Assembly (NCBI GenBank): GCA_030704615.1
Contig: CM060732.1
Coordinates: 79,980,001 to 80,044,000, forward strand
DNA: 64,000 nucleotides
Reading direction: 5' to 3'
Origin: Takakia lepidozioides
Taxonomy: Eukaryota; Plantae; Bryophyta
The notes beneath the pieces were generated by a model. That model searched no databases, was not told the DNA's origin, and worked only from the letters and a program-made list of their open reading frames with translations. Position numbers and translations under genes: made by a program. Positions 11,570 to 63,194 of the stretch are shown here, one piece after another. Every line of letters starts with the position of its first letter. Position 1 is the stretch's first letter.

Positions 11570-12510
11570 ATTTGTCTTCTGGACTTGTTTGGCGGGATCA
11601 ACACCGGATTGGCTGCTGTGTTACAAGCAGGTGTACGAGTTCGGCGTTACCTGTATGTGGAGAGAGATGAGACTGCATGACGCGTTTCACTTCGCCATGT
11701 TGCTCAGTTGGTGCAGCGGTACCCTGAGTTGTTGTCGGTGTCTGCAATTCGTGGATATCAGCAGGCCTTGCCAGCAGACATTTTGTTGCTGGGGGCGCAG
11801 GATTTGGAGCGGGTTGGCTCCATTGATCTGGTAGTGGCAGGTTGGCCCTGCCAAGGGCATTCATCAGCCGGGCATGGCAATGGATTGCGAGACTCGAGGT
11901 CGGGTCTGTTTTGGGAGATGGTGCGGGTTTTGCGCCACTTGCAGCTTCATCAAGCTGTATCTCCAGCATACATCTTGGAGAATGTGCCACTGATGGGCGA
12001 TTCTCGGGCCAGGGTGATGGCCAGTGTGCATCAAGTCCGGTTGTGGCTTGGGTCAGCAGTGTTGCTAGATGCAGCTACAGTGGGGTCACGAGCTCATCGT
12101 CCACGGCTATGGTGGACTAACTTGATGCCACCCGCACTGCTCAAGCGTGCATTTGATGGGGTGCAGCGGCCAGCACATCTCACAGTGGATAACATTCTGG
12201 ACACATGGAGGCAGTCTCAGCGTGTGAGACACGATGACCGTTCGCCTTTGGCAGTGGTCAACAAGGTGGGTCAACCACGGACAACATTACCTACACTGCT
12301 CAGCTTCCCAGGATCGCATGCTTTCCGGGATAGTGGACCTGGCCTCCTGTGGGATGCTCAGTTGCAGCAGTTAGTGGAGCCTAATGCTGACGAGCGTGAG
12401 CGGGCAATGGGTTTTACCACTGGTACCACGGCGGTGTCGTCTCTTTCTGAGGCATCACGTCGTCAAGTGTTGGGGCAAGCAATGGATCTCAATTGCTTGA
12501 CCTGGATTAT
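11570..12510 (+). other. C5-cytosine DNA methyltransferase domain (DNMT3-like) within pol
   Basis: Motif I LDLFGGINTG, II YVERD, IV DLVVAGWPCQGHS (catalytic PC), V RSGLFWE, VI YILENV, VIII RAHRPRLWWTN, IX ERERAMGF, X RRQVLGQAMD. A single TGA at 11678 interrupts it. Confidence 0.92.
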
Positions 12511-15500: not shown

Positions 15501-15808
15501 CCATTGCACAGCACCGTGATACGTTGAGGTATGCCACTATACGTGGTGGAGGATATCGTCCTGGGGTTCGGAGGTTTAGCCCTGGTGACTATGTTTATTT
15601 GCAGCAGACTGCTCCTACGACTCTGGATGTTACTGCAGGGCGTGTTATTCTGAGGGTTCGAGAGGTGTTGCCCTCAGGGGTCCTGATCTTGGAGGGTCGG
15701 GATGGCATGACTTGGAAGGACCATGTGCGTAATTGTGCACCATGTCACCTTCCCAATGTCGATGGCAGAGTTGACCCAAACTTGGCAGTGGTACCTGCAG
15801 GTTTGAGG

Positions 15809-15943
15809 TGCATGCTCTGTGGGTCTGCCAAAGGGGCAGCCACCATGCTGGTGTGTGATCGATGCTCAAGGGGTTGGCATATGGGATGCTTGACACCACC
15901 TCTTGAGAAGGTTCCTGACGGAGATTGGTTGTGTCCACACTGC
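15809..15943 (+). other. PHD finger at the integrase C-terminus
   Basis: CMLC...MLVCDRCSRGWHMGCLTPPLEKVPDGDWLCPHC, a C4HC3 pattern. Confidence 0.93.
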
Positions 15944-16197
15944 TTGGGATAGTGGCAGTGGACATGACTGGAGGCAGCTAACAAGACATGGGAGGCCAAG
16001 CTCATAGGAGTCAATACATGAGATCCCAAGCTCAAGTTCACAGGTTGCAAGACGGCGACTAACGATGGGGCAACTCTTGCACCCGGCCTCTTGATCTATC
16101 GAGTTTGAGTGTAGTAGGGATAGTGGTGGAGGACTTAGTGAGGCTATGGTCACTATCACATCTTGTGGCTACCTGGACTTAGAGGGACCTAAGCACC

Positions 16198-26177: not shown

Positions 26178-26716
26178 CTAATCTTCATCATCCTCATCTA
26201 TGTCTGGGTCACTACATGTATCACTGTCTTCATCACAAACTTGATCTTGTCCAAGGGTTGGCTGAACATCATCACCACGTATACGGGGTGCTCGGAGGTA
26301 CAAGGAGGCCACCTGCTCTGGAGTAACCGGTACCGCTCGGCTGCATGTTGGGCCATCAGTAACCAGAGTCTCCTCTAGTCTTTGTGGGGCTAACAATCCT
26401 TCCACTTCCGCCACATCATCATTATCAATTGATATGTCGCAGACCACTCTACGTGCTCGGGGGCTCTTCTCCAGGACGACTTTCCACCCCGGCTCCTTCA
26501 CACAATAAAAAAAAAACACTTGATCAACCTGGCCAGGAAACACAAAAGGTTGCTCAGAAGATGGAAGCATATGGTTAAAATTGACCAGTGTGAATCCAGC
26601 ATCATCCTGCTTCATTGACATAGGTTGACGACCCACGCGACGCGCCTGTACCCACGAACACAAAAACACTATAGGCTGTGTTTGGCCATAGTCAATTTGC
26701 AAAATCTCCCTTATAA
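26178..26716 (-). pseudogene. CACTA transposase C-terminal region (DUF4216-like)
   Basis: IREILQIDYG...VFLCSWV...DDAGFTLVNF...QPFVFPGQVDQVFF...WKVVL, paralogous to 59680-59950. Confidence 0.85.
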
Positions 26717-27232
26717 TCATCCACAGACTGATGGTCAAACCGAACGTGTAAACCAGATTTTGGAGCAGTATCTTCGCTGTATGATAAATTATCACCAAGA
26801 TAATTGGACGGATCTTCTGTCATTGGCTGAGTTTGCCTACAACAACACTATACATTCTTCGACCAATCAAACTCCATTTTTCTCCAATTATGGTCATCAT
26901 CCTCAAGCAAACCATTTCCACATGAAGACTGTTGGAAAACCTGCTGCAGAAAACCTTGCTACTCATCTTGTTACAATTCACAAGGAGCTTATATTCCACC
27001 TCGCAGAAGCTCAAAAACCTTACAAGGAGTATACAGATCAATGTCTCCAACTCCAACCTCAGTTCAAGGTCGGAGATCGTGTGTGGTTTTTTCGACGAGA
27101 CATATAGACCTCACGACCATTAAGGAAGTTGGATTATTAACGCTTGGGACCATTCAAAATTATTCGATAAATAAATCTGGTCAGTTTTCGGCTTGAACTC
27201 CCATGAAATATGCGCATCCATCCAGTCTTTCA
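26717..27232 (+). pseudogene. Chromovirus integrase C-terminal part
   Basis: HPQTDGQTERVNQILEQYLR...AEFAYNN...FKVGDRVW...LGPFKI...MRIHPVF. Confidence 0.9.
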
Positions 27233-38700: not shown

Positions 38701-41547
38701 AGACAGCGAGCGTCAGAAAACCGACAGGAGTACCTTGCAGCGGTGGAGGAAGCTGCCACCCAAGAGGGACGTGCACGTCAGCTGGAGGAGGAGATAAAAT
38801 CCCTCCGTAGTAAATACAAACGTGACATAAAAGAGGAGAAAGCTCACCGAGAGGTCCTGGAACAGGTTGTCTATGATGAGCCCTGCACTGTTGTCAAGTT
38901 GTGTTCTAACTGCTCCTGTCTAAGCTGGGAAGGTTTTCCCAAGTTATATTTTGGCTGTTAGAGCTATTTGCCATTTACGCAATTTCCATGCATGCCTGCA
39001 GGAAATAGAACAGGAGAGGGCTGCACTGGCAGAGTATGAGAAACGCGTTCGGGCAGAGGGCCGGGCTGCCCCTGACAAGGCAGTTTCTGCTGCTCAATCC
39101 CAGGAGCTTAACAGTGGGTTGCTATTTACCTTCTCTTTTACTTGGAAAGAAAGCCATTGTTTTCCTTCCTGTGCACTGTGCAGGGAGGAAGCCTATAAGC
39201 AGCCCGTTGTTATGATTGGACTAATTAGCATCAGTCACAATGACAAGCTACAACATCAAGCTTAATTTATGGATGTATCATTCTGAAGCACAGATGTCCA
39301 CCATGCCACGCTATCATACCTAGCACAGGCCAAGCAGCATGGACCCTGATTTGTGGCAGCATATCCCTGTTATGTTGTGGCGGTGTTTAATGTGATATAC
39401 CCCAAGGTGCGATCCAATAGAGCAAGTTCTGACCACTCGACCTTAAGGAACTCCTATTGTCAACGAGCAATGATGAGGAACTGGTTAAGAAGATGGAGCT
39501 CTGGCTATTGAAAATGAAGAGCTCTCAGAACAGTGTGATTGAAATGCTTGATGCCAAAATCTGGGTGAAGAATCAAATGGATAGATTCTTATCTAGTCAG
39601 GCATTTTTGGTGGTGGCAGGTGCTGCAAGGAGCCCAAGTCTGAGGCGTTGGCCGAGTATAAGTAGTGCAGGCAGCGTGGAGGAAAGTTCGTTTCTGCAGG
39701 CCTCTTTGGAGTCTACGCCAGACCGTTTGCCAGGAGAGAGACATAGTTTCAGTGACCGACCACCATCTCCATCTCTATATCGGCCTCAAACTCCATCTCC
39801 TTTTGGGAAGGGCATGGTCCCTGCAGCTACATTTGAGCAACTTGAAGCTCATTTTCGCCAGAAAGATGGCGAACTGTCCTCCTATTCAGCCCGCTTGGTA
39901 TGTCTCACCTTGACTCACATCCTCTTTGTACTTCAATTGGTGTAACAGATGGAGCTGGATGTTCTAAGTCATATATGGGCTCTTGGGTTTGGGATCAGTC
40001 ATCTTTTGCATGCCGTATTTTCTTTCCAAACATATGTGGATGCTTAAATGTGAGGAGCCCAACAGCACAGTTTTGCTCAAGGGTCCGAATCACCTCTTTA
40101 GCTTAGTCTTCGACACTGACCAAAGTTGGAAGGTCCTGTGTTACGAAAACTGTTCTGCATCTGTGGTATTCCATTTGTGGTATTTGAGTTGAAGCTCTCT
40201 GCCTCTTTGTGCCTGCAGGCTGCATTAGAATCCACCCGGGACTCCCTAGCAGAGGAGCTGGTAAATGTAACTACTCAGGTGTGTTCATATCCTGACCTAT
40301 CCTTTGGTCAAGCGCTGATTTCATTTTTGTTTTTGGAGTTTTGGAGATGTCTGTCAATTGGTTGAAGTTTCTCCGGCATCCTTGATTTCATGAGCTGGTG
40401 TTTGCCATCAGCTTGAAGGTTGGCACACATCACCTCTTTTCAATCTGTTCTGTTTCATGCAACTTATATGGCTTAATTCTCTCAACACCAACACCGATGT
40501 TTGGCTGTAGCTACATGGTATGGTCATTCCACAGCCAATTTCCCAAGTTACCAGCCCGTTTTCAATCCAGTAAAATCTGCAGTAGGACTCCACTTTTAGG
40601 AGTTGTTGGAGTCTTCTCTGCAAGGTTACAGCATTTGGAGAGTCAGGATTTACTACATCCTACCAGCCAGTCATAGATAAGCACGAACTTGGGTTTGTTG
40701 GTCTCGTGAGCTCAATGTCTGCATGGATTTTGCCACATGGTCTTTTAAGCGATATGAAAAGAATTTTCTGGCTCCATAACTTCCGGATCTGATCTTCTCT
40801 TTTGTTTTCGTGCCAGTGTGAACAACTACGGATTGAAGCCACATCATTGCCGGGAATGCGCGCTGAGTTGGAGGCCTTGCGGCGCCGGCACACATCCGCC
40901 TTAGAGCTCATGGGCGAGCGGGATGAAGAGGTGATACCTCGCCTCCCGGTGTAGTAGCTTCTGATTTATCTCCTGAAGAGTGGTTTTGGACACTAGAGGA
41001 CACTCTTACACTTATAAGCTGTCGGCTACCACAAGAGCTCATTTTGTGAAAACATGGCGTGCAGGTGGAGGAGCTTAGAGCAGATCTTGCAGATGTGAAG
41101 CAGATGTATCGGGAACAGATTGACATGCTTGTGGGCCAGGTAAGCTATGGCTTCAATGTTTGTATTATAATTAATGTAAGTATTTTGTTTCACTTGGAGG
41201 ATGCATTGCACACTGTCATGGATAGTAATGGTTTGTTTTGAAGTGCACATGACATTGAGCACTACTTAGTTTTAAAGAAGCCTCCTCCCCCATTCTCCTT
41301 AATGACTCAAATATATGGTTGTTGACTTGTTTCTGTTCTGTTTGGTAAGACCTGACCTTAAGAAATATAATTGAAGCCACAGAGTTTTTGTGCTAATAAT
41401 CTGCCTCTGCAAAACTTAACCCAAGCCTGTAGGAATTTATTGGCTGTTCAATGTATGGACTGGAATGCTTATCTTTGGCTGACACTTTGTTTTGCGCTTT
41501 TTTGTGGACAGATTGAAAGACTAAGTTCAGGGGTGGGGATCAGATAG
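32735..41547 (+). CDS. GC5: Golgin candidate 5 (TATA element modulatory factor/TMF1-like coiled-coil golgin), multi-exon
   Basis: N-terminus MAWLGKVTLSDFAGAVTKLSESVKNIEKNFDSALG; conserved blocks MKMMEAALQGAA, VYALTKERDMLRREQNRKSD, GEELSKKQ, PDSTRPLLRQIEA, SLAEELV, ALELMGERDEEVEELRADLADVKQMYREQID. Approximate exons: 32735-32867, ~33388-34187, 34379-34450, 34995-35069, 35374-35488, 35698-35759, 36232-36279, 36738-37022, 37294-37353, 37873-37956, 38223-38288, 38449-38547, 38647-38865, 39002-~39115, 39620-39897, 40219-40278, 40817-40930, 41065-41139, 41512-41547. Confidence 0.92.
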
Positions 41548-43271: not shown

Positions 43272-45306
43272 ATGCAATCAACTCCTGGGGATGGGCTGAG
43301 CCAGCAGCTGCGGCAGAAAGCATTCGAGACTCATATCCTGAGGTCACTCAAGGTGAATGGGAACTTAAACACATTATTGGTGGCAAAATCGGTGGGACTA
43401 GGGAGTTGCAGTGAGGCGAACACTTTGCTGCACAGCCTTCTTCTTCGTAAGATGGTCGTGAAAAATCCGGATAAGACTTGGGATTTGCTGATTGCGAGTA
43501 CCCCGCAACAAGTGTCACCTCCTCTTGCAACTGATGAGGCGAGTGGTGCTCCAGATGACCGCGGCCATGGAGTGCCGACTTTGCAAAGGCGGTGCATTGG
43601 GGGTCCCAATTGTCTCTGTGGTACTTTGGACTTGTTCCATGTCTTTGAAACTCTGTAATGTGCTGCATGTGGGAGAATGAAAGAGAATTGGATGATCTTT
43701 GAAAGTTTCCACAAAATGCTCAGTGACCCGCTGGGACGAGAGAGTGAGGGAACGAAAAGAAATGAATTTCGCCAACGGGAGGCCCAGATTCCCCAAGTTG
43801 ATCAACATCACAGTATAAGGACAGGATGCTGCAAGGTGCACTAGGAACCGGATTCAATCTAAATACTGTACATATTTTGATAATCTCTCTCTAGCTCCCT
43901 CTTTCCTAAAACTTGCACGCCCATGGCACGCAGGGAGGAGCCGCCAAGTGCAGCAGCCCCTGAAGGAAAATCGGCCAGCGGAGCTCACTCAGCTTCAACT
44001 GCAAATACTGACGGAGCTCAAGAACCGATGTTCCATGTGCACACTTGAGCTGTCCAAGATAGTCGGGTTTGAGACATGCGGTGACGTGAACCCGTATCTC
44101 TATGGCCTGAGAAACAACGCCCTTATCGAGAAACTCTCGGATTCCCCTCCCTTTTGGCGAATTAGAGCGCCTGTCGACAACCCCATGGTAAGAAGTAATC
44201 TCAGCTGTGCTTGCCAGGGAGAGAGAGAGAGAATTACGTCCAGTAGACAGGAACAATGTTAATGACGTTCACTCTGTGGGACCAAATGAGAGAGGAAAAA
44301 GATGATGGTGTCCACAACAGGCCCTGAGGATCAGGTCCCAAGTAACACTGCAGAAAAGAGATGTCCTCCGAGAAGCAAGACTTCTTACATCGGTATGGAA
44401 TTCAGCATGCAGTCCACTGCCTGAGAGAATGTGAGAGACTTTGTCAAGTCTGTCTTCCCGAGCTTTTTCTGTGCATGTTTATATGCTTTCGATATTCTTT
44501 CTTCATATTACCCACCCTCAGTTGGCCTTGGTGACTATGAAGGGCGACGGGAGCTGGACGCCACCACTCAACAGTGATCCGCAACCCGTTCCCGACAGCC
44601 ATCCTCATAATGCGGCTCAGGGTCATTTGGGTGGCGTTGGAATATCTAGCCCGGTAGCTATACAATCCAAGGACGCTGTCAATCCTTCCTTTGGTACTCT
44701 CTTGATCTCTTTCGATGTGTGTGTTTGAAGAGGCGGAGGATGAGCAGAGAGACAGCTTCACGAAGTGAATCACTCTGTCCATTTCATTTCATTCTCTTGC
44801 TGTTCTCTCTCTTTAGGTTTCCTGGGGAGGTTATCCATTTGAAGCTTTCTTTCTCTTACGATTTCGTTGGATTGCTCACGAGACACTGTGGTCTGTAGGA
44901 GGGAGAGGGCCGATGCGATCACTGAATCAATGGTGGCGCCGGCAACCAGCGGAGCTGACTGATTTCCAGCTGAGGATACTCAAGGAACTGGAGACCGGAG
45001 GTCCAATGCTGACAATTGTTCTGTCGAAGAGAATGGGCCTGCGAAGGCGTCGCGATGTGAACCCCTCTCTCTACAACTTACGAGATCGTGCTCTCGTGGA
45101 AAAGCACTCTGACGTTCCTCCGTCTTGGCGTATTCGATTGCCCGCTCCCACGCCCGGCAAATCAGTAAGCAATTCGCCCATTCTCGCAGACATAGCGCTT
45201 GTGATGTCAGATATATTGCTATGGTTCAGTAGGCTGAATGTGATGTGGCATGCAGGTTGCAAACAAATTGGGGAGTGAGGAAGATGGCGAGAGTGCGATG
45301 GTGTGA
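43272..45306 (+). CDS. Predicted protein with three Z-alpha-like (Z-DNA/Z-RNA binding) winged-helix domains
   Basis: Phase-compatible GT-AG exons 43272-43620, 43934-44187, 44522-44693, 44899-45164 and 45256-45306 give 363 aa with no stops; the true start may lie further upstream. Domain cores DVNPYLYGL...SDSPPFWRI and DVNPSLYNL...SDVPPSWRI; a more divergent first copy EANTLLHSL...DKTWDL. Confidence 0.75.
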
Positions 45307-47629
45307 ACGGGAGCAGTTCTTCTGCCGTTCTTCCACCTGTGCTCGTATCATATGCATAGTCTACTACCCCAAGGTGCACCATGTGTAATTTTGTCGGTCA
45401 GGATGCAAGCTCCACAGCTTTCTGAAAACACTTTTCGAGGACACATGGGCTCAGTGAGGGAGAGAGAGAGAGAGAGAGATTTTTAGTCCTGGTCATCGAT
45501 TTTTCCTAGAAAGGGAACTCAGAAGCCCTTAGATCATATTCAAACAAGGAAAAATAACATGAGCCATAAGGCGTGCAAGATGGTATCATATCCTGAAATC
45601 AGCATCATAACTCGAATGCCCAGAAAGAACTTCTGGGGAAGTTCAGAAGAGGTTCAGAAGGAGAACCTGCTGATGCATGGTAAACAATTGGGCCAGGATT
45701 ACTAAACTCTTTGTAGCGAAACCTGGTGAAGTCGGAAAGGCCATTCTTCGTGATGGACTCTGTAGTTTAGAATGTCAAATTTCTTGTAACTCCCTCTTCA
45801 TTTTCGGTGCTGACCCTCTGCTCCTTAATAGAGGCTGGGTGCTTGTGGAGGAAGGACCTGCAGGAATCCTTGTTGTCTTCCAATGCTTCATCGCCTATCT
45901 CCCACTCACCTGCGTCTTGTTGATAAACATCCGATTCATCAACTTCTGGGCTCCGGTATCTCTTTCTCGAGTGCTCCTCCATGGTGGCCTCTGGGAATCA
46001 GTTCTCTCCGTTGGACTTCAAGGGAAAGACGAAAGAGGGGAAGCAATGTAAGCAGAGCTTACAAGAGGCGGGGAACCAGTCGACAGCTGGCTCTGGCGGA
46101 GCAATGTAAGAGTCTGGTTTATGGACATCTTGTCATTCTTCGCATCTCAAAGAGACGTGAGTCCCTTTTTGAGCTCATCGTGCCTAGCCTCTCCCTAAAC
46201 TGTAGGTCTACGGGAAGACCATGGCCCTAATGAGGAGGCTGGCAGTAAAAGCGTTCTAGAAGATATGGTGGGCTTGGTCCATTTTACGGCTGACAGTAGT
46301 ACTCCGGTAGTTGGGTCCAGTACCCTGCCATGTGGTGGGTAGCTGTCCACCTCACCTTCTCATTAAAACGCACCAAGGGTAAGCACCGCTGTTGTCTTCC
46401 CTGCATTTGTGTGTAGTCCGTCTTCACATCACCTCCACTCTTAATGCTGAGTTGTTCTGATCATCACGTCGATTTGTTGGAAGTGTACCGTGCATGTTAA
46501 CTTAGCGTCTGCAATCTCACACTCTTTTGTGTAGCTTATTGACCTTTACAGTACAAGATCTATTTTCAGCTTTCAAGACGTTTGAGTAGAACAGTTGGAT
46601 GTTTAACCCCTCCAATATGAGGGAGTTACTCACGAAAGGATTCCATGACAAGAAGCTCATTCCACCCTTGTATATCTACCCATTTGTGAGGCTTCAAGTT
46701 CAACCAACAGAATTGGTATGGATATCAATTACACCATAAAGAAACATAAACAGACATTGGGACCATCTACAACATGCGTAAAATAGAGAAAATACTTGAT
46801 GACAAGAATATATTATTCTATACTGACACTAACGTGGCCTGGCACACTGAGGGCATCCTAACCTACAAACAAGCATCCCATCCCAAAATAATCTCCTTGC
46901 AATCATCAACAATTGCATCCTCTGCTGTCCCTGCACTAATTGGATATCCAATTCCAACAAGAGATAGGGAAATGCACATACGAACTTACCTTCCAGCCCT
47001 CTTTCTTATAGAAACAAATGACTCCTCAGAAGTTCACAGCCAGCTCCTCTGGTGCAACTGTAGGTTGCGCAAAAAAAAAGCAGCATGTTACATATGACGC
47101 GATCCAACCAGAAGCAGGGAGTTGATGACAGCACCCATTGCCTTCTGGCTTTTGAGGTCGACAGCATCTGTATTGGTTGGTTTGAAGAAGAAATTTTGTT
47201 GCTCTCGCAGTTTGTTCTTTGTAAGAACAGAAACAGACTGTGCTGCTCAACTCCTATGCCTCCAATTATGCCGTACAGCAGTATTCAATAAAATACTGCT
47301 TGAGGCGACCTGAATCAGGTTGCCGGAAAATTTTGAATGGATGAAAATCATCGAGATGATCTCGGATGAAATTGAGCCCTGAATGAAAAATGTAGGAAAT
47401 TTAATTCCACGCCCCCCCCTTCTGTTGATGGCACCCTAAAAACCCTACAGGACAGCCGACAGGAATTTTTGGAAAGGGTGGGGGTACCCAAAAATGCCAG
47501 CCGGGCGTCCGTGCGCGGGGCCCACCGGCCACATCGCACGTGCCCATTGAAGACCCTATTATCTCCAGCCGCGCCCGTGCCCCCGTCCGCCGCGCGGCCA
47601 GTCCCCCGCCCATGAGTCCGCTGCCCTCC

Positions 47630-47850
47630 AATCTGCCAGTCCGCTGCTGGCCAGTCTGCTGCCCACCAGTCTGCCAGTCCACCAGTCTGCCCGCAAGTCC
47701 GGTGCTGGCCAGTCCGGTGCCCAACAGTCTGCCAGTCCGCCAGTCTGCCCGCCAGTCCGGTGCTGGCTAGTCCGCTGCCCAGCAGTCTGCCAGTCTGCCA
47801 GTCTGCCCGCCAGTCCGCTGGCCAGTCCCCTGCCATCCAGTCCGCTGACG
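47630..47850. repeat. Short-unit repeat CCAGTC(T/C)G in a GC-rich region upstream of the MULE-like gene
   Basis: Many ccagtctg/ccagtccg units. Confidence 0.85.
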
Positions 47851-48054
47851 GCGCAGGATCGCCACCGTCCATTCCCATAACCCATCCGAGCCCTCCATTT
47901 TTAGGGCTGCAATTCAAACCTTTATCCCTGCCGCCTGCCACTTGCCAGCAGCCGCGAACGTGCGCACTGTTCTCCTGGCACGTTGTCGATTGTGTCTTGT
48001 ACTGCGGCGCGTTTCTTGCATGTTCAGAAGCGTGTCTTTTGTACTGTATAGGGC

Positions 48055-49139
48055 ATGGACGTGGAAGCAAAACCCGATGATATACTGATCACGGAAAGCC
48101 CGCTTATACGGCCTCTTCGACAATGTTTGCAAACAGCAAAACCAGGACCCTTCAACAGGAAAGATCTCCATTGGAAGAGTGAGACGCAATATGGGTTTAT
48201 GGGTGTGCGAGTGAAAGTTGAAAAGGCCTGCATACCTTGGGATAGAGTTGGTGACTTTGTCCTGGGAGAGGAGAGTCTGGAGGACTACCCCACTCAGTTT
48301 TGGGTGAATGTCCATTCTAAAGTGGAACCCGGCTCGCGAAAAGCACCCAGAGCCAACACATTTATGTCCAGTACTATGTGTGCACCATCCTCAGTCCTTT
48401 TGACGTTTCATTGCATGTCTGTTGCCATTTTTTGTTTCACGAGTTCTCTGATTTTATGCTTCCTCAAGTCGTTGGCGATTTTAGAATTTTCTGTCCAGGT
48501 ATCAATGCTGCTACGGTCCTGATGACAAGCGCACCAATAAGGCAATAGTGGAGGATCCAAAACACAAGCGTGGAGGACCTCTTGTGGGTGCTGGAACATC
48601 TTGCCCTCATAAAGGCCCAAGGAGAAAGAAGTCGGAGTATGGAGAGTCTCACAAGCGTGGTTGCCATTGTTGTTTCAAGGTCCGGCAATGCTATCTCGCC
48701 CCTGACATCTGTGTCCTCACGTACTACAACAACATGGAGCATACAGATGCGCAAGGGAAACCCTCGCATGGGAAGTCCGCAGAGTTCAGGAACACCCGCC
48801 ACGCCTATGCACCACACATTAGCGAGGAATTGAAAGCCTGGGTCGTCGAGTGTTTGTGCCGAGGCCTGTCGGTCGCCCAAATCATGATGGAGCATAAAGA
48901 GCACGTGATGAACAACACCGGCTTGGGCAATGCATGGACCCGCGATGATTTCTTGTTGGAGCAAGATGTTCGCAACCTTGCCGAGAAACGTGCGTGGCAA
49001 ACCTTCAAAAAGCACGCCGATGATGCGGAGAGTGTGCGCATGTGGAGAGATCAGAATCATGCGTCCGTTTTTTTCTATCAAGAGGAGAAATTAGAGCCAA
49101 CATTCGAGCATTTTGATGGAGATTTGACATTCACTATTG
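48055..49139 (+). pseudogene. MULE-related SWIM-type transposase-like gene, 5' part
   Basis: IPWDRVGDFVLGEE...PTQF, intron, YQCCYGPDD...RGCHCCFKVRQ...EH...SHG...DDAESVRMWRDQNHASVFFYQE...FTIG, resembling the plant At1g60560-like MULE/SWIM family. Confidence 0.75.
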
Positions 49140-50305
49140 GTGAAAAAAACCATTCGGTGTGAGACCATCCACTGGCTGTTTTCACAGCTTCAGCAAGTTT
49201 GGAGGCCACGTGTTCTTTTGCAAACACCGCCACGTGGATCCTAAACGTACAAAGGGTGTGGACTTGTCCACACCTACGGAAAAATGATGCGACACCCTGT
49301 CACCTGGGCTCGACGACATGTGGGCAACGGTACGGGCAACACGTGTATTTTGGAGAGGACGGCACGTGGCGTAATCTGCATGGAGTGGGTGTGTAGTATT
49401 TTACTGCCTATACTGTAGGTCATTCCACATAGCTGTGGAGCATACCATAGTGGGTGTGAAATATTCTACTGCTGATGTTGTAGGTCATTCCACAAAAATG
49501 TGAAGGATGCCACAGGCAAGCTGCGGTTGATTTCACATATTTGTGACGTCATGGTGTGCACAATTAATCCACAGGCATTATGATCATATCACAAATCGTG
49601 ATACTGTCCACACTGTCAGTTTCACAGTCCATGTGAAATATGACTCATATACATAAACACATTTCCAAAGCACCACGGCAACAACCTGCTCATGACATGT
49701 ACAATTGACTAAGCATGGCCAGAACAACAGAAAAAATGACCAGATGCAAGGGTGCTTCAAAGTTGGGTACGCCCTTCATTGCCCAAATACAGTTTAGTCT
49801 GAACATGCAAGTATTGCAGAGTCTACACTGCTGATCACAACCCCACAATGTACCCAAATCCTACATTGATGCGCAAAATCACGAAGAAAAGGTGAAATCG
49901 ATATGAAGTGGCGTTCAGTCAAAATTGCCTTCAAACTGAGGATCCCCCACAACCTCATGTTCGGGTCAGTTTGAGGAACTTGGCAGACCACAGGGCCGTG
50001 CTGCCTATAGTGTCACTAAGCATCACAACGGGAGGCCTAACATCATTGTTGGGGTATGGTAGAGCAACATCTGCCCCATGTACTACTTCAACCGAGACAA
50101 CATGATAATCGGCATACATAAGCCTGCCAGTCAGTCGACATGCCCAATATATGGCCCACGTCTGCCTTCCGTTTGGGTGCATTGGGGTCAAACATTGTGA
50201 CCTTGTCACCAACCTGAAACTGGAACAGCCAACATCACCAATGTGTGCCCTTGTCATTTGTTATGCACATGAAACAATTATGGACAGGGAAAACGCGAGA
50301 TGTCA

Positions 50306-53300
50306 TCATATATATAGTCCTGCAAACAAAATACGGATGTACTTCCACGAAGGGAAACTTACAACAGGAGCCGGCGCTTTGAAACTTCCCATACGGCTCC
50401 CATCAACGTTGCTGGCAGCAAGTCTTGCGGACTTCTTGGTCATCTTCATCGCAACAATTTCCTTTGGTGGCTTCTGAATCAATAGAAACCCACACATGTA
50501 CACAGAATTCATGAACGGCCTGCAGGTATTGCATAATCGACTTGGAACAGCACAAGAATATAGGAACACGAGTACTTACCTTCCGAACAACGGCCAATTT
50601 TGTTGTTGAATCAATGTTCTTCCCTGCCCCAACAATAACCACTCATGTGCCCTTAGCCCCTGCCCCTATGTCTTGGGCAGTCTGTCTAAGTTCACTGCCG
50701 GTGTGATCCTCCACTACAGGCACTCCCTTCTCAATAAGGGGGGATAGGTCATCATTGGCACCATAATTAAGGCAAGGATCGTCACATGCCATGTTCTAAA
50801 CTTTGTCCTCACCTGTGGCATCTTCTTCCACAATACTGCCCCCTTTCCTTTGTCCACTGCCTCCACTGCTAGGAGGCTGCTCACCTGTACTTGTCATTTC
50901 CACAGTAGCCGCAGGTGGGACAATACCATGAACAGGGGGCGACAACTCACACACAATGTTTGATGCTGATGGAGATTCATCCCTCGGCAGGTCCAAACCG
51001 AGCTTCGCTGCCAATGCCATGTTGAACTTCTCTGTCTTAGATACTGCAGCAGCAAACATGGATTTCACTACCTGCAATTCCAATTTGTGCTCCATTGAGC
51101 TGGCCTCCATTGTATGTTTCCATCCTTCCAAGCCATGAAGCCGAGAATGCTCCAAGGCCCTGCCACAAATAGAGTGGAAATACGATTCAATACATCGATC
51201 GCACTAGCCATGCGAGGTAATTTATTGGCATATGTACAAGAAGGCAAAACCATAAATAATTGACAAGCACATCATTGCAACAAATGCAGGTGGGTTAGTT
51301 AGTTACAGAACGGGTGGCCCCTGCTGAATCAGAACCATACCCCTTGTTGCTATTCTTGCTCCCCGAAATTTCGGATAGAAGTGGAGGTCGACCACTTGTC
51401 TTAGCCTACACATGGACAGGATATGGGAATATTAGTGCCATCCTCTAAGAGTAAGATACAAATGACAAGACACCTCGCTACCTGAATATATTGGCAATGT
51501 CATGAGACAGGCAGATTTACCAAACATTCATCAACGCCACTAAGGCCACTGCGTCCAGATCTCGAAGGGGCACCAACATGCCCCCGTGCATGCTTGCCAT
51601 TATCACGACTCTTTTGCCATTCGGGCGTGTTCCAATGCCTCACTAATTCTGCCCAAGTCTTGTCCGCAACATAGTGGGGCTTAGGTTTGCCACGGGAGTA
51701 CACTTTTCTAAACAGTTTGATGCGCTGGTATTTAATGACGCCTCCAATCTCAGTTCGAAGTTGGGCGCCAATTATCCCAGGAGGTAAATATTCCCAATCA
51801 TCTGCTAATAGTTCACCCACCTCGTCAATCAGACTTTGAGGTTGAAGATGGATGGGCACAGAACAGTCCAGCACACGTTGGCATTGCCCTCGCAGGGCTG
51901 CCAGCCAGTCATCCTTTTTGCCACAGGCAACTATGAATCTCTTTTGCCCAGCAGCCACATTTGCACAAGCCGTTTCCTTCAAGTCATTCCGTGCTACTCT
52001 CCTTGCCTTGCGCAAAAAATTGGCTCTGTCCTTGCCAGTCAAATGTTACGCATCTGGAGTCATATTGGAATCACGGGCCTCCTCTCCTCCCTCACAACCT
52101 GCAACATGGGGCCCTGCGGGCGGACATGAACCCTGCCACGCACCAACGTGGGGTGTGGGGTGGACAGGAACATAACCTGTGCTCGGAGCTGGTGAGCTTG
52201 GGAATTGAAGAGGCCGCGAAGCGGTGCAATTGGGTGAAGCGGTGGGCTGCCTGGAATAAGGGCCATGCAGCGGCGCACTATACATGGGGCTTCTGGGATA
52301 CGTTGCCTGGGGAGGATACGCAGGTGGGGGAGGGTTGGGGTGAGGGTACCACACACCTTCGTGGTAGTGCCCATGCTGAACAGGAGCATGTTGTGCTTCC
52401 CCAGTTTGCGGAAATGCCCCCACACGGAACTGCAGGACTACTTGGACCTGCACATGATCGGTTCTCCCCTGACGGGCTGTTTGCATTGTAGGACTGAGAA
52501 AAGGGCGGGTGAATTTCAGGGGCGGCTGGAACATGAGCAGTCTGTTGTTGATATTGTGCATACCTCTGAATGCCAGGGGGATAAAACACACCAGTGTTAG
52601 GTGGAAAAGAGGGAGGGCCTCTTCCATCCGGGGTTGGTTGAAGACGTGGGGAGGGATGGTTGAAGACACCTGCCGGAGCAACTCCCTTCTTCTTTCTCAC
52701 TGCATCCTGCAAATCAACATGTGGGAAAGAGTTATGTAGGAAGATAAAGCATGAACATCATGTAGGATACATCAACAAAAAACGCGCTCTATAATATACA
52801 TACACTGAATGCAGCAGAAATCGCACCCAAAATGCATTTACGTCTGATCCATTGAACACGCCAAACGTCACTGGGGAAGTCCTCCTTGTATGTTTCGACC
52901 CTCTTTGGGGGTTCTTTGGGGAATCCCTTCTAGGCACAATCTGGCCCCGATGACCATTGTACATATCAATGAGAGTACAATATGATAATGGCTGATAATG
53001 GCTTCACATATTATCAACATATGACAATAGAGGGGGCAAGAAGATGGGGGAGGAAGAGTCGTGAGCGCCCCCTCTCGGACATGGCTGGCTGATGAGGCGG
53101 TTAGCATCGTGCTCCTGGGGGTTCCTCCTCTCCCACTACAATTTCTTTCTTGTCTAGACATGACACCACAATATGCAGCCCCCTACCTGTCCAGGTCCCT
53201 CCCTCCCACAACCCCCTTTGCAATTTTTGGGTATTAAGACAGGCCATCACAAGTTTGAACCTCCTGTGAGGGAGTCAGCAATCTGTAGAGTTGCATTGCA

Positions 53301-56039: not shown

Positions 56040-59000
56040 ATGAGAGAGGTCGGAACTAGAAACACTCGGCGCCGCAGTATGGTGCCCGATACTTACGTAA
56101 GACTTTGGCAAATCGAGGAACGACGTGCAACTAGACTGGGTCTTTCAAAGATAATGTGTCCCTGCAATGACTGCCATGGGGGTCGACTCCAATTCGTGGA
56201 AACTGCCAGATTGCATTTGCTTGCCAACGACCGGGATCCACTGAGAAGTGACGTGCATCTCTCGCCTCACTTCTCGCAGACATAACTTAGGATGAAGCCC
56301 TTAGAATGCTAATGTTGAACGGCCCTCTACTGTACATGTACGGTGGACTACTGTATGGAAACTAGCACGGTCAAATAGGAGATTCCCTGTTTTATGCAAC
56401 AAGTTACATTTTGGACAAGACTATACTCTTATACTTTGGAGGTGAACATGCAGGTGGAGAGTGTTGACTCCGAAGACGAAGACTTTGTGGAAGATCGTAG
56501 CCCCCCTGAGGATGATGTTCCGAGACAGATTAGCCCTGTTCCTGTTCGTGGTGGAGAGAATCTAGACCCCGACGTCGACATCATTCGCATGTTGTAGGAA
56601 ACGTTTGCAGTTGCAGATAATGTACAAAGCACCATTAATGAGGATGAAGGGCTTGGAGAAGACGAGCGCCATCATGATGGACAAAGTCATGGGGATGGGG
56701 ATGACGGTCCTGCTTTCCAATTTCAGCATCAAGCAACCACACCTCTGTATGTTGGCTGCCCCACCAGCTGCTTGAGTGCGACGTTGCTCTTGCTCAATGT
56801 TAGTGCTACTCATGGTGTCACAAACGCAGCGATGGATGAGCTTCTGAAACTTTTGCACGGACATCTATTGCCTAAAGGGAACTTTTTGCCCAAATCTCAT
56901 TACGAAGCGAAGAAACTTATAACAAAAGTTGGGCTTAATTACGATAGCATCCATGCTTGTGAGAAGGGATGTGTGCTATATAGGGGAGATCTGCAGGATG
57001 CACCATCTTGCCCTAAATGTGGGGCGCCTCGGTACATCCCTGGCATGAAGACGTTGGTTCCACAAAAGGTCTTGCGGCATTTCCCCTTGATTCCCCGGCT
57101 GCAGCGCATGTACAAGTGCAAGGAGATATCTAAGCTTATGGTGTGGCACACGGGGAACCAAAGTCAAGATGGGAAGATGAGACACCCGCCTGACAGCCTT
57201 GCATGGAAATACATTGACGATACATGGCCTGCTTTTGCAGCTGAACCTCGCAACTTGCGACTAGGTCTGGCATGGGATGGTATCAATCCCTTTGGTGATA
57301 AATCAACAAAATGGTCTACGTGGCCTGTCTTGCTCATGAACTACAACCTTCCTCCTTGGCTGAGCACAAAGCCTTTTTTTATGATGTTGACACTCTTAAT
57401 TCCAGGGCCGACATCCGTGAAGAAGACCAATGCGGATGTGTTCTTGCAACCTCTGGTGGATGAGCTGACCGTGTTGTGGGAAGGTGTTAGGGCTAATGAT
57501 GCATCTCGCAATGAAGGATCAAGGACCTTTGTCATGAGAGCCATTCTGATGTGGTCAATACATGACTATCCTGCATATGCCATGCTAGCAGGGTGTGCAG
57601 TTGGGGGCTACAAGGCTTGTCCCGTGTGCGGGCCCAATCTTGATGCCAAGCACTCCAGTGCACTGAGCAAAATGGTGTACCAGGGGCACAATTTTTTTTT
57701 ACCAACAGGCCATCCATATAGACGCAATCGCAACCACTTCAATGGAGCCTCCGATCACAGACCACCCCCCCCCCTCCCCCCAAGTATCCACTGTGGATCA
57801 GCTCCAAAATGCGGAGGAAAACGAGAGGTTCATGGAAACATTCGGCAGACGTCCCCGGAATGTGTGCCCTGCCAAATCCCATGGCATGAAGCGAAGGTCG
57901 ATCCTTTGGAACCTGCCATATTGGAAGGTGGGTATGTCTTCATTGTTTGTTTGTCGGCAGGGCTGATTTCATAGTTGCATGGATACAGTTGTAAGGATCA
58001 TCACACACGACTTAGATTTCAGCCTAATGCAAATTGCATGAAGCAAGTTTGGAGTCGCCTATGTATGGCACATGTAGCAGCAATATGGTTGTTTCCATGA
58101 AAATGTCTGGCTTTTGTCTCTCAGGATATTGTCTGCAGTATGCAAGACTGGTTTCTTCCTTTTCCCATTATTAAGATGTCATCTCTTGGCTTTACCATCA
58201 AAGTATACCATATTGATGGTGGTTCCATGATTGCAGGATTTGTTGATATGGTATACCCTTGATGTTATGCACTGTGAAAAAAACATTTCTGAAAACATAT
58301 TGCGCACCATATTGGGGGAAAAGGACACAGTAAAGAGCAGGAAGGACATGGAGAATGAGGGCATACAACCTCGCTTATGGTTAAAACCCCACCCCGGAGA
58401 TGGCAGGAAGTTGGTGAAGCCACAGGCTCCTTATGTGTTGAATCGACAAGAAACTACTACCTTCTATGCAACTTTGGGTGCTCTAAAGACACCGACAGGG
58501 TATGGTGCTTCATTTAAGAAGCATATTGCTAAGAACAAGCTTTCACACATGAAGAGTCATGCCATCTACTGATGCAACAAGTTCTACCTTTGTGCATTCG
58601 AGGTTTGCTAGGCAAAGGTCCAAGGCTCGCAATCATGAAGCTATCTCGTGTATTTCGCGCATTGTGCATGAAAACAGTGGATCCCGAGGAACTACCAGCC
58701 CTGAAGGAGGATGTGGTTGTAACGCTTTGTTTGTTGGAGAAAGAGTTTCCCCCCTCATTCTTCGATCTCATGACCCACCTTGTGCTACACCTTGTGGATG
58801 AATTGGAGGTTTGTGGTCCTGTTAGTTCACGTTGGATGTACCCCATCGAGAGGTACATGAAAAATTTGAAGGGATATGTGAAGAGCTATGCCCGGCCAGA
58901 AGGTTGCATGGCCAGCAGGTATTCTCTTGATGAGGCTCTTGGCCTCCTCACAGAGTACATGGCTGCATTTCCAGGAACTCGTAGAAGGGTCTGGGATTCC

Positions 59001-60201
59001 AACGAAGAAGAAAGTGTTGTGGGAGAAGTATTAGAGGGCGAAGGAACTCCAAGGAAACTGTCGGCTGAGCTTCGAGCCAGTGCACACGACTATGTGCTTC
59101 ACAACACGGCATGCATGAGACCGTTTCTGAGGTAAGTATACATCATTTATTTAGCTTCACATGCTAACTCTGGGGTATTTTTCCGGATACAAAATTCGCG
59201 CATTCTCAATTTTCACTCAGCCTCTTTGTACATATTATGGTTCTGACTAAGTGTGAATTGAGTATGACCAGACTTTATGATATTGAGAAGCTACCATAGA
59301 ATCAGCCAGAGCCGAATTTCGAGCCACATACAGCACCCAAGGGAGAAATGCACACCAACGCACCGTTCCATACAACGAAAACATGTTGCCTTTGCCTGCT
59401 TTTCATATGTGGATACAGTCGGCAGTACAAAATGTTGTTTCAAGAGGAGCAGCGTATGATGCAAATATTCGTCATCTGTGTAAGCCACCAGGGTTTGTTG
59501 CTCGTTCATTTCGCTCTATGTGGGCATACGGAAATCACTACAGAGTGGTGGAAACAGGTGTGGTTGATTACCATGTCACATTCGACTCTGGGGTTGCACA
59601 GATTTTTGCCGAAGAGTCAACGGGAAGGGGTGTGGATGGTAACCCTGTCATGAACCAGCTGCAATATGTTGGTGTTGTTCGTGAAATTTTACAGCTTCAG
59701 TATGGTGCTGTCACTCCTGTAGTATTCATATGTGAATAGGTCAGAGCAAGCTTGACAGGTCGCAACCGCACCATGAAGAAGGATGAGTATGGTTTCCTAC
59801 TCATGGACTTCGATCGCATGCTGCCACCGGGAGATGAACCATTCACATTTCCATGGCAAGTCGAGCAAGTTTTTTTTGCAGATGAGCCCTCCAACGCTGG
59901 TAACTGGAAAGTAGTACTTCAGAAGGAGCCGCGCTCACGGCGCGTGGTACATGATGTCACTGGTGCCAGCTTGGGTGAGAATGAGTCATGCGTAAGGATG
60001 CAAGTGGCGGAGGCATTGGAGGATGTGAATCCCAATATAGAATTTGGACCTTCAACGACCCTTACCGAAGTTGAGATGGCTACTATTGCTATGATGGGGC
60101 CCCCACGAAGGGACGAACCATGGCACCGAGATAGTGAGGATTGCAACACTGACCATGAGTGTAGTGAAAATAGTAGCGATGAAGATGACTACATCTGGTA
60201 A
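56040..60201 (+). pseudogene. CACTA TnpD transposase (Transposase_21 + DUF4218 + DUF4216), disrupted
   Basis: CPCNDC; IHACEKGCVLY; LRHFPLIPRLQRMY; MRHPPDSLAWK; RNLRLGLAWDGINPF; YNLPPW; HDYPAY; LDVMHCEKN; FFDLMTHLVLHL; WMYPIERYMK; DEPFTFPWQVEQVFF. Stop at 56595, frameshifts at the poly-C run (~57770) and ~58565, stop at 59737. Confidence 0.93.
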
Positions 60202-63194
60202 AAGGACAATAGCGTCATGTTGACATTTAAACTGACACACTGAGTGACATTTTGAGTTCCAAATCACAGGACACCCTGTGCTTCAGCCACTGGCCTGGTA
60301 AAAGGACAATAGCATTATATGACATTTTGAGTGGCACACTGAGGGGTATTTTGAGTCCCAAATCACAGGACATCCTGTGCTGCAGCATCCACTTGTTGCG
60401 GTTATTTTCCCTGTGAATGTAGCAGCGAGGAAGATGATTCCTGGTAAAAGGGCAATAGAGTCATGTTGCTTCAGTTGTTACTCCACCTCTCTACTATCTC
60501 CCCCCCTTCCCACATCCATGCCTTACTTACTCTCTAGCTACGAACTGAATTCTGATGCCCCTGCTCCTCCCTCCTCCTCTCTATTACTCACGCTGAACAA
60601 TCAATTGTACAAAATGCTTGCCAAATCACAGGACACCATGTGCTTCAGCCAGCGGCCAACTCCCCCACTCCACTTGTTCTTTTTCCTAAAGCATGCTTTA
60701 TATTTTCCCTGTGTTCAGATTGTGGGGGTTGGGTGCAATGTGTTGGGGATGTACTTCTTTATGATGTTTGTTCTGGTTTGGTGCAGTCGGGGGACAATCT
60801 GCACAGCAAGTCACATGTTGGATCTAATGGGCATTGCAACTGTGGATGGTGATTCACATGTCTTCCCCACTAATAGGACCCCTCTGTTCATGCTTGGGAT
60901 TTGGCAAGTTCGTAAACCCCCACTTTTTTGACTGTGTGCTTGCAGGTCACATGTGCTACATGGGGCAGAGCCATTCAGTTGGCTACAGGTTCAATTACTC
61001 CGCACATGACAATATGTGGCCCTATTTATGATGGCTTTGACTTACTCATAGAGAGGGCTCGTGTGTTGGTTACTCTATTTTTGGCTTGTTTAAAAACCCT
61101 CACTGTGACAGGGATGAGGCTTCTATCATTGCTCAATTTTCCACTTGTGATGGTGGAGGAGAATGTTCATGAATCACAAGAAGGTCTGTGGCACCTCGGA
61201 ACCCATGAATTCAGAATCATGGAGATTTCAGATTCATATATAGCCAAAGTTGATCTTTTGCTTTGTGATTTCTCTCTGTTTCTCATGTTTGTGAGATTCG
61301 GTGCTTCATCCCTCTGCATGTACCACCCCGCTTTGTCATGATTGCGAGTTGGAATTGTAGAGATGACCTTTCTTTGAAAACATACATACTTTGTATGGGG
61401 GGCTTGAGGTGAGCAATCCAGAGACCATTATGTGTTACAGACACTAATTACCAGTCCACATTATGGGTGTATACTTTGCATGGATTTGCAACCCCCCACA
61501 TTATTTGGTCCTTCCGAAAATAAAACTCTTTCTTGCTAGAGCTGGAAGCTCATGGGCGCTATGCCTTCAACCATCCAGATGTGCTGTTATTTGTTCTGAA
61601 TGTGGACATCACCACATGTGCACTTGTAATTTTACCGCCCATTACCAAGTTATTGCACCACACATGAAACAAAAGTATTACAGATTCATAAGCAGTATGG
61701 ATGAAAGGTCTGAGAAGTAGATAACAAGAGGCAAGCTGAACGTCGTACATGGGACACTCAGTTTTTGACAGGAGAGGCCAGTTAAGTACCTAAACTTGAG
61801 GCAAAACCCAAAAGGATAATGTATGCAGGCTGAAATGTGGATAGTCTCTGCATTGCTACTGCTTCACCCCCAAACCATCATGGCCACAAGTACCAACGCT
61901 GAAAACTGAAGCAGAAACGTCATGCATGAGACGATTGCGAGAAGCTACAATGCATGAATCTACATTGCGGTGTATGTCAATGACACTGTGTATATCCTCG
62001 CTCACCTCGATCCATGATCACCATGACATCGTGCTCATCCGAGAGGGCATGGAAGGTCAGTCAATGTGTACCACAGGTAGTAATCGTGGAGCAACGGGTA
62101 CTTCTTGCCAACAGATCGGAGCCTCTTATTGCAATTTGCAAGACACCAAAAGTAGGCCACAGGCTCCTTCTTGTGGATGCCACTCTGACCCAACCAGTGG
62201 AGCACGACGATGATAGCTTTTTCTGCGCAGGCATTCTGCCTGGTACATGTTCTTGGGCTGCCTTCTGCTTTTTGACTTGAAGACCGAATGCGCGATTCTA
62301 AGCGCAACGGTGCTCCATGATTTCATCCAGTATTGGCTGGTTTCGCAGATGCTTCTGCTCGACTTCGCGGTAGTGAGAGGCCCGTTTCCACACCTGCGAT
62401 TGAGGAGGCATTCCTGCACACTTTGAAATGCTTTGCCGAGATAGAGAGTCCACTGGAGTGCAAAGCAAGCAGATGAAGGAAGCAGACGACATTCGGTAAT
62501 GCGCGGGAACCACCTTGTCTGCCAAAGTGGACAATGGACAAGTCGCACGTAGGGAAATCATGCCTGTGCCTTTTCCAGCACATTGGTGGTGACTTGGCAT
62601 TAGGGGCTGGTCTCACGGTGCATTTTCCACGCCGTATGGTCCATTCCACACTTCGTAATTATCATGCAGGAATTATGGTGTTGGTGAGATATGTAACTAG
62701 TTTTATTTTATTTTATTTTTATTTTTATTTTTATTTTATTTATAAATAAATGAAACAGGGAGGCCGTGGCATGGGACTTTTTATGGGGAAAAAAATAAAA
62801 CCCCCATGAACGCCATGAGAGTCACACACTGTAGTGCGACCATCTCTTTGTATTTCCGAGGCCAGATTTCGAAGTTCGTGATTTATTTCGTTTGCAGCGG
62901 AGTACTAACTAAACCCATACACCACAATCAGTGGAAATAATTGTATGTTCCCATTTCACACGCGTGTGTAACATGCCATGTAAACTAAGCCAACCCCTGC
63001 CACGCTCATGGCTGTTTTCACACCGTTCTTGCGTGGGGTATGGACCACATGTGAGACACCCCACAGTTAGGGCATATTTAGACCCACACCTTGGCTCAGT
63101 GTACAGACCCATGATAAAAGCCGTGGAATGTGCCAGGTGTGAGATGGCAGAGCCGTGGAAAAAGCCGGTTTCTCTTCTAGTGGTATGAGGTCAA

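Follow-up and report, generated by a model that had tools for sequence, protein, structure and literature searches.

Three Z-alpha-family domains encoded by a Takakia lepidozioides gene with liverwort relatives: a candidate reader of Z-form nucleic acids in land plants

Described Z-alpha proteins and the Takakia lepidozioides gene

The biology of Z-alpha domains, which bind Z-DNA and Z-RNA, has so far come from animals and their viruses, with ADAR1, ZBP1, PKZ and E3 as the proteins studied. A 2023 review names ADAR1, ZBP1 and PKZ as the only eukaryotic Z-alpha proteins (PMC10523160), and according to Herbert (2024), plants do not have the Z-alpha fold in its canonical form, which was given up after the green algae (PMC11293857). 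A gene of Takakia lepidozioides can now be placed beside these systems. It lies at positions 43272–45306 on the plus strand of a 64,000-nucleotide stretch of DNA (GenBank assembly GCA_030704615.1, contig CM060732.1, positions 79,980,001–80,044,000 of the forward strand), which is referred to below as the window, and it encodes three domains of the Z-alpha family, termed repeats 1 to 3 from the N-terminus. It is close to certain that the gene encodes such domains and is orthologous to a group of liverwort genes. The wider reading, in which it is a host gene whose tandem-duplicated Z-alpha protein binds Z-form nucleic acids, is given a probability of about 0.6 as a whole, Z-binding included. What is new here is a land-plant Z-alpha gene with a lineage-specific third domain. 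Together with its liverwort relatives, it shows that land plants have canonical Z-alpha domains in which the set of recognition residues is complete, and that these domains occur in a protein free of enzymatic parts.

Vertebrate ZBP1 (DAI), which is composed of Zα1, Zα2 and RHIM motifs, resembles the Takakia lepidozioides protein in that tandem Z-alpha domains are carried on one chain without an enzyme. The second ZBP1 domain also lacks the Pro-Pro pair of the wing, and its wing is just as long as the wing of repeat 1. However, neither a RHIM nor any other signalling motif was found by Pfam in the Takakia lepidozioides gene, and the identity is about 27%. The RIPK3/MLKL pathway is not known from plants. 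In ADAR1 p150 (Zα and Zβ, followed by double-stranded RNA-binding domains (dsRBDs) and a deaminase) and in the invertebrate ADARs with multiple Zα copies, a competent and a degenerate domain occur together, as they appear to do here, and Asn173, Tyr177, Pro192, Pro193 and Trp195 of ADAR1 align with repeats 2 and 3. Unlike in ADAR1, no dsrm or A_deamin domain was found in the gene or its surroundings, and the degenerate domain is N-terminal. Fish PKZ combines two Zα domains with an eIF2α kinase, and its Zα bound to Z-DNA (4kmf, 1.1 Å) is the top structural match of repeats 3 and 1. The kinase of PKZ and the dsRBD of the viral Zα proteins (poxvirus E3, CyHV-3 ORF112) have no counterpart in the Takakia lepidozioides gene, and a motif scan of IMG/VR gave no close viral relative. 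In viral Zα proteins, an enzyme-free Z-alpha module can act by competing for Z-RNA. Judged by its sequence, in which no effector part was found, the gene is not a member of the ADAR1, ZBP1, PKZ or E3 families.

An original prediction, made from the letters of the window, held that Z-alpha domains are characterised mainly in animals and viruses and not in land plants. This agrees with the published statement that plants lack the fold (PMC11293857), but public protein sets already contained Z-alpha proteins from Marchantia and Calypogeia, which had been left unnamed. In the literature searched, no paper was found with “Mp7g05170” or with “z-alpha” together with “Marchantia”, and the three papers that combine Z-DNA and Marchantia deal with other subjects according to their titles and abstracts. 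This Z-alpha family is thus visible in databases and is undiscussed in the literature searched.

Gene structure, domain identity and predicted fold

The gene is composed of five exons on the plus strand, with a total of 1092 nt, i.e., 363 codons and a TGA stop, and its intron phases are, in order, 1, 0, 1 and 0. Exon 1 (43272–43620) contains the start codon, repeat 1 (a degenerate Z-alpha domain at about 43290–43487) and a Pro/Ala-rich linker, and it ends in phase 1. Intron 1 (43621–43933; GT..AG, phase 1) falls within a Gly codon (G/GG) and leads to exon 2 (43934–44187), which encodes repeat 2 with a Z-alpha core at about 44005–44163. Intron 2 (44188–44521; GT..AG, phase 0) is followed by exon 3 (44522–44693), a Pro/Ser-rich linker of 57 codons that ends in phase 1. 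Intron 3 (44694–44898; GT..AG, phase 1) falls within a Gly codon (G/GA) and is paralogous to intron 1. Repeat 3 is encoded by exon 4 (44899–45164; Z-alpha core at about 44931–45134), and after intron 4 (45165–45255; GTAAGC..CAG, phase 0), exon 5 (45256–45306) supplies an acidic tail of 16 codons with the TGA stop at 45304–45306. All eight splice borders are canonical and all exons are open; the five phase-compatible exons and the uninterrupted protein of 363 residues that had been predicted were exact.

The length of exon block 2+3 (426 nt) and that of block 3+4 (438 nt) can be divided by three, and the border phases match, so that either block can be duplicated or skipped without loss of the reading frame. 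If intron 4 were retained, the reading frame would stop at 45278. The acidic tail from the spliced exon 5 ends in a D-G-E-S motif, which is also present near the end of the Marchantia polymorpha protein, and this shared motif favours the spliced reading. As a separate observation, intron 2 contains an open segment of 72 nt (44321–44392, plus strand) with an AG acceptor and a GT donor in phase 0-0; as a candidate cassette exon, it would add 24 codons in frame.

Domain searches and fold predictions were run on single exons. Against Pfam z-alpha (PF02295; curated cut-off of 21 bits), repeat 3 reached 29.5 bits, repeat 2 reached 19.4 bits, slightly below the cut-off, and repeat 1, taken alone, reached 12.3 bits, which is also below it. 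At the listing threshold of E<=10, z-alpha was the sole Pfam family returned for each of the three repeats, with no competing winged-helix family, and the linker of exon 3 had no Pfam domain match. Repeat 1 reached 31 bits against a hidden Markov model (HMM) of 68 Z-alpha sequences built without repeat 1. When all six frames of the 64-kb window were scanned with Z-alpha HMMs, the segments of the three repeats that had been described were the only matches. In sequence searches of the PDB, repeats 2 and 3 matched only the Z-alpha and Z-beta domains of ADAR1, ZBP1, PKZ, poxvirus E3, 34L and CyHV-3 ORF112. The top match of repeat 1 was the second Z-alpha domain of human ZBP1, and one unrelated endonuclease appeared for it below the threshold (3fd2, E 0.78). 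No Pfam match to a deaminase (A_deamin), dsRBD (dsrm), kinase or RHIM was obtained in any exon or in the scanned open reading frames (ORFs) of the surrounding 64 kb, as the original prediction had it for the first, third and fourth of these.

Fold predictions with AlphaFold2 cover repeats 3 and 1. For repeat 3, the mean predicted local distance difference test (pLDDT) score of the model is 83.7, with a core above 92, and for repeat 1 the pLDDT is 82.5. Both display the predicted order α1-β1-α2-α3-β2-β3, i.e., a winged helix of the Z-alpha type. When the model of repeat 3 was compared with the PDB by means of Foldseek, the first 16 matches were all Z-alpha or Z-beta domains, mostly bound to Z-DNA or Z-RNA, with a root-mean-square deviation of 1.1–1.9 Å; they include, besides PKZ, ZBP1 (4ka4, 1.2 Å, and 3eyi) and ADAR1 (1qbj and 2gxb). 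For repeat 1, the leading matches were the PKZ Z-alpha domain and the second Z-alpha domain of ZBP1. The leading matches of the two repeats have template modelling (TM) scores, normalized by target, of 0.78–0.92, and the two models could be superposed on the Z-DNA-bound domains of PKZ, ZBP1 and ADAR1 at 1.0–1.9 Å. The assignment of the repeats to the Z-alpha family, proposed from the letters, is now supported by Pfam, the PDB sequence search, the predicted fold and the liverwort orthologues with their shared intron.

The contact residues distinguish the three repeats. Positions are numbered as in ADAR1, where Lys169, Lys170, Pro192 and Pro193 contact the phosphate backbone in the 1QBJ complex. 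The conserved recognition residues of Z-alpha domains are Asn173, Tyr177 and Trp195 (PMC11293857). Repeats 2 and 3 retain all three, together with Pro-Pro at 192/193, and thus keep the motifs N-x-x-L-Y and P-P-x-W, as had been claimed for them. Beyond this first reading, the alignment places Arg-Arg at positions 169/170 of repeat 3 and Cys-Gly at those of repeat 2. Repeat 1 retains Asn173 and Trp195, has His at position 177, no basic residues at 169/170 and no prolines at 192/193, and its wing is two residues shorter; the description of this copy as degenerate, with Tyr replaced by His and no Pro-Pro, was correct. The second Z-alpha domain of ZBP1 binds Z-DNA without wing prolines. By this comparison, the protein carries one fully canonical domain (repeat 3), one nearly canonical domain (repeat 2) and one domain similar to Z-beta (repeat 1).

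Liverwort relatives and gene history

A search of 1.84 billion representative proteins with a profile built on repeats 2 and 3 gave 201 matches at E<=0.001. The top whole-protein scores belong to ADAR-like proteins with dsrm and A_deamin domains, which lead this ranking because each has many Z-alpha copies (3–6). When single domains are ranked, the C-terminal domains of four liverwort proteins come first, with 66–75 bits. They are followed by a 105-residue JGI metagenome fragment (62.6 bits), whose contig reads like that of a leafy liverwort near Calypogeia, and all remaining matches have at most 51 bits. The four proteins are MPTK2_7g05170 (Mp7g05170; 400 residues) of Marchantia polymorpha, Mapa_016115 (KAG6542425.1; 393 residues) of Marchantia paleacea and CAM6120378.1 (406 residues) of Calypogeia fissa with its paralogue or allele. 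MPTK2_7g05170, KAG6542425.1 and CAM6120378.1 each have two Z-alpha domains and are encoded by two exons. All four are annotated as unnamed or “hypothetical”, and the public sets give a precomputed Pfam z-alpha mark for them.

Every one of the liverwort proteins consists of a weak N-terminal Z-alpha domain (Zα1), a long Pro-rich linker, a canonical C-terminal Z-alpha domain (Zα2) and an acidic tail, with no effector domain. The second domains are 44–49% identical to repeats 2 and 3. In the first domain of M. polymorpha, both Asn and Tyr are lost. Repeat 3 and every liverwort Zα2 retain the Asn, Tyr, Trp and wing Pro across a very deep split. The genes of M. polymorpha, M. paleacea and C. fissa have a single intron of phase 1, which lies in a Gly codon and precedes helix 1 of the second domain by 14–18 residues. 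In the Takakia lepidozioides gene, introns 1 and 3 have the same phase and the same place in a Gly codon, ahead of repeats 2 and 3. This match of position and phase points to a host gene family in which an exon duplication in tandem has taken place in the present gene. The latter shares with the liverwort two-Z-alpha family the weak N-terminal Zα, the canonical C-terminal Zα, the phase-1 Gly intron, the Pro-rich linker, the acidic tail and the lack of any other domain or effector; it differs from the liverwort genes in having three domains and five exons, whereas they have two of each.

In a quick maximum-likelihood tree of 70 domains, with Shimodaira–Hasegawa-like approximate likelihood ratio test (SH-aLRT) support, repeats 2 and 3 fall together with the Zα2 domains of the liverworts (SH-aLRT 94). 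A subclade of the liverworts sampled (SH-aLRT 87) does not contain the repeats of the window, and repeat 1 is placed on a very long unresolved branch. The orthology of repeat 1 with the liverwort Zα1 is proposed on the basis of position only. From the tree and the content of the window, we read the gene as one from a bryophyte, a land plant outside the Marchantia/Calypogeia crown. In a comparison of synteny, the neighbours of the liverwort loci were found to differ; one of these loci adjoins a gene of the ribosomal protein L30 family (Pfam Ribosomal_L30).

Several further searches describe the extent of the family. A profile of two full liverwort proteins returned only the four liverwort proteins when the 8000 candidates sharing the most words were scored, and it is suspected that the Pro-rich linker supplied many of the shared words. 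A word-index search with the second domain of Calypogeia alone returned only Calypogeia. A pattern scan of JGI metagenome contigs with the alignment of plant Zα2 domains confirmed nothing, and as such a scan depends on exact motifs, the blank is weak. The family is small, and its known relatives were found only in liverworts, the searches being of a design that leaves mosses, hornworts and ferns undecided.

In the ancestor of the family, a weak Z-alpha domain at the N-terminus would have been joined to a canonical one at the C-terminus by a disordered Pro-rich linker. A tandem in-frame duplication of the second-domain exon block could then have led to the order Zα1 (degenerate)–Zα2a–Zα2b with the acidic tail. 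The simplest history is the vertical inheritance of a host gene and, in this lineage, a tandem duplication of the block that encodes its second domain. The gene could also have arrived as cargo of a CACTA-type transposon or be the remnant of an integrated giant virus. CACTA pieces are located on either side of it, at 26.2–26.8 kb and 51.5–61.3 kb, and the spread of Z-alpha domains has been tied to giant viruses (Herbert 2024, PMC11293857). Nevertheless, neither terminal inverted repeats nor direct repeats were found around the gene, and its flanking sequences have no second copy in the 64-kb window. The spliceosomal intron is common in position and phase to the three liverwort genes, which lie at non-transposon loci, and the IMG/VR pattern scan gave no close viral relative, although a blank from an exact-motif scan is weak. 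Transposon capture or a viral origin is unlikely, and of the readings considered, this one is given the smallest chance.

Constraint, proposed function and genomic surroundings

Between the exon of repeat 2 and that of repeat 3, the identity is 58% across the aligned codons and 69% across the best 130 nt. The proportion of synonymous differences (pS) between them is 0.72, which is near saturation, the proportion of non-synonymous differences (pN) is 0.32, and the ratio of non-synonymous to synonymous divergence (dN/dS) is about 0.18, a rough value because it is taken from a near-saturated dS. The much lower pN beside a near-saturated pS indicates that the duplication is old and that both copies have long been kept under constraint.

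Some of the evidence weighs against a Z-binding protein from a functioning host gene, and part of it concerns the domains themselves. Repeat 2 scores slightly below the Pfam cut-off and has no basic pair in helix 3, repeat 1 has lost the specificity Tyr, and the model of repeat 1 was built on an alignment that consists mostly of Z-alpha domains. Between the M. polymorpha and M. paleacea orthologues (loci L001, 8001–9536, and L004, 3001–4518), dN/dS is 0.76 overall; for the single parts, the values are 0.26 (Zα1), 1.25 (linker) and, from few sites, about 0.9 (Zα2). In a rival account, the gene would be genuine and expressed, and its domains would have ceased to recognise the Z form. They would then be generic winged helices that bind ordinary double-stranded RNA (dsRNA) or DNA, structures of another kind, or proteins, as has been proposed for the Z-beta domain of ADAR1. 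The His and the missing Pro-Pro pair of repeat 1, the Cys-Gly of repeat 2, the loss of Asn and Tyr from the M. polymorpha Zα1, the fast evolution of Zα2 between the Marchantia species and the results from the ESM Atlas fit such an account. The feature search of the Atlas gave generic winged-helix clusters of bacteria and archaea, and the shape search gave ZBP1 and ADAR mixed with winged helices of the MarR/TrmB type; neither of these searches discriminates. However, the Asn, Tyr, Trp and wing Pro kept in repeat 3 and in all liverwort Zα2 domains speak against a generic role, as do the Pfam and PDB sequence searches, which at E<=10 gave Z-alpha and no other winged-helix family. A loss of Z-reading is considered unlikely, yet it is the strongest competitor to Z-binding. 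In the second domains, the recognition helix and the wing are identical in the two Marchantia species, and other domain positions vary. The fast evolution in Marchantia fits either an arms race, as in a defence-type gene, or weak constraint.

The other part concerns activity. The gene lies within a transposon-rich stretch, and it is missed by the RNA contigs of two small runs with the same species label (33 and 49 million letters). It might accordingly be a silent or recently dead copy, with an open frame that is unexpressed in what is probably silenced chromatin. The Gypsy and CACTA neighbours are in keeping with this, and a collection of 15 billion proteins contains no protein identical or nearly identical to the product of the gene. 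On the other side are the five open exons with their eight canonical splice borders and a pN far under pS between repeats 2 and 3. As the runs are tiny, the silence of the RNA contigs says little and is no evidence for or against expression. A dead or silent copy is regarded as a rather remote explanation, and the gene is presumably expressed. A single 428-nt contig of one run (X2) matches the window downstream of the stop, at 45501–45600 and on to about 45928, with 0 mismatches. It begins just past a (GA)n run at 45448–45488 and may be a 3′ untranslated region, a neighbouring transcript or plain DNA, the kind of run being a guess.

If the gene is a host gene for a Z-binding protein, its possible mode of action can be outlined from the sequence. 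Repeat 3, with the full contact set, would bind left-handed Z-RNA or Z-DNA and read the zig-zag backbone and the syn purine in the manner of ADAR1, ZBP1 and PKZ. Repeat 2, which has the Asn/Tyr/Trp/Pro-Pro core and no basic pair, would probably bind Z-RNA or Z-DNA likewise. On a flexible tether, the two repeats could engage a single Z-segment on each of its strands, with avidity, and stabilise the Z form, while repeat 1, with its His in place of Tyr and its short wing, may be an accessory domain of the Z-beta type. The lack of an enzyme, kinase, dsRBD or RHIM suggests action by occupancy or by the recruitment of partners. The protein might thus be a binder or adaptor that shields or marks Z-prone double-stranded nucleic acid or that recruits partners through its linkers and acidic tail. 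A part in sensing dsRNA from viruses or transposons, which had been raised when the gene was first described, would be plausible.

A broader proposal would be that bryophytes retain a working system for reading Z-nucleic acids from the streptophyte algae, in which a tandem Z-alpha protein that evolves fast and has no enzyme attached would mark Z-prone dsRNA or DNA of transposons or viruses, or shield it, and that this counterpart of ZBP1 and ADAR1 p150 was lost in the vascular model plants. It is tentative and, taken in full, probably goes too far. The tandem duplication and the fast evolution in Marchantia are as expected of an immune-type gene, and weak constraint would fit them too. The existence of a relative in the easily edited M. 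polymorpha makes it directly testable whether plants read Z-form RNA and DNA and for what purpose, be it transposon control, virus defence or transcription.

The surroundings of the gene contain host-like and mobile sequences. Upstream, at 40802–41241 on the plus strand, two ORF pieces match the C-terminal domain TMF_TATA_bd with 26 and 27 bits at profile positions 55–94 and 93–115. By their sequence, they resemble the final exons of an ordinary host gene of the TMF/golgin type, whose end would lie some 2 kb upstream of exon 1, and such a neighbour favours the host-gene reading. Downstream, a G+C-rich tandem array at 47593–47845 has units of about 29 and 58 nt with GCCAGTC-like words; it is located inside long overlapping ORFs on both strands (47348–49162), which have no Pfam match. 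Plant-type proteins of CACTA/En-Spm transposons are encoded at 56772–61341 (plus strand), 51500–52042 (minus strand) and 26178–26798 (minus strand), with matches to Transposase_21 (236 bits), DUF4218, DUF4216 and, weakly, Transposase_24, and the best database relatives of the CACTA transposase are at most 58% identical. A Gypsy-type element occupies 11708–15952 on the plus strand and includes a piece of a C-5 DNA methylase (48 bits), reverse transcriptase, RNase H and integrase, and it ends in a C-terminal PHD finger (41.7 bits).

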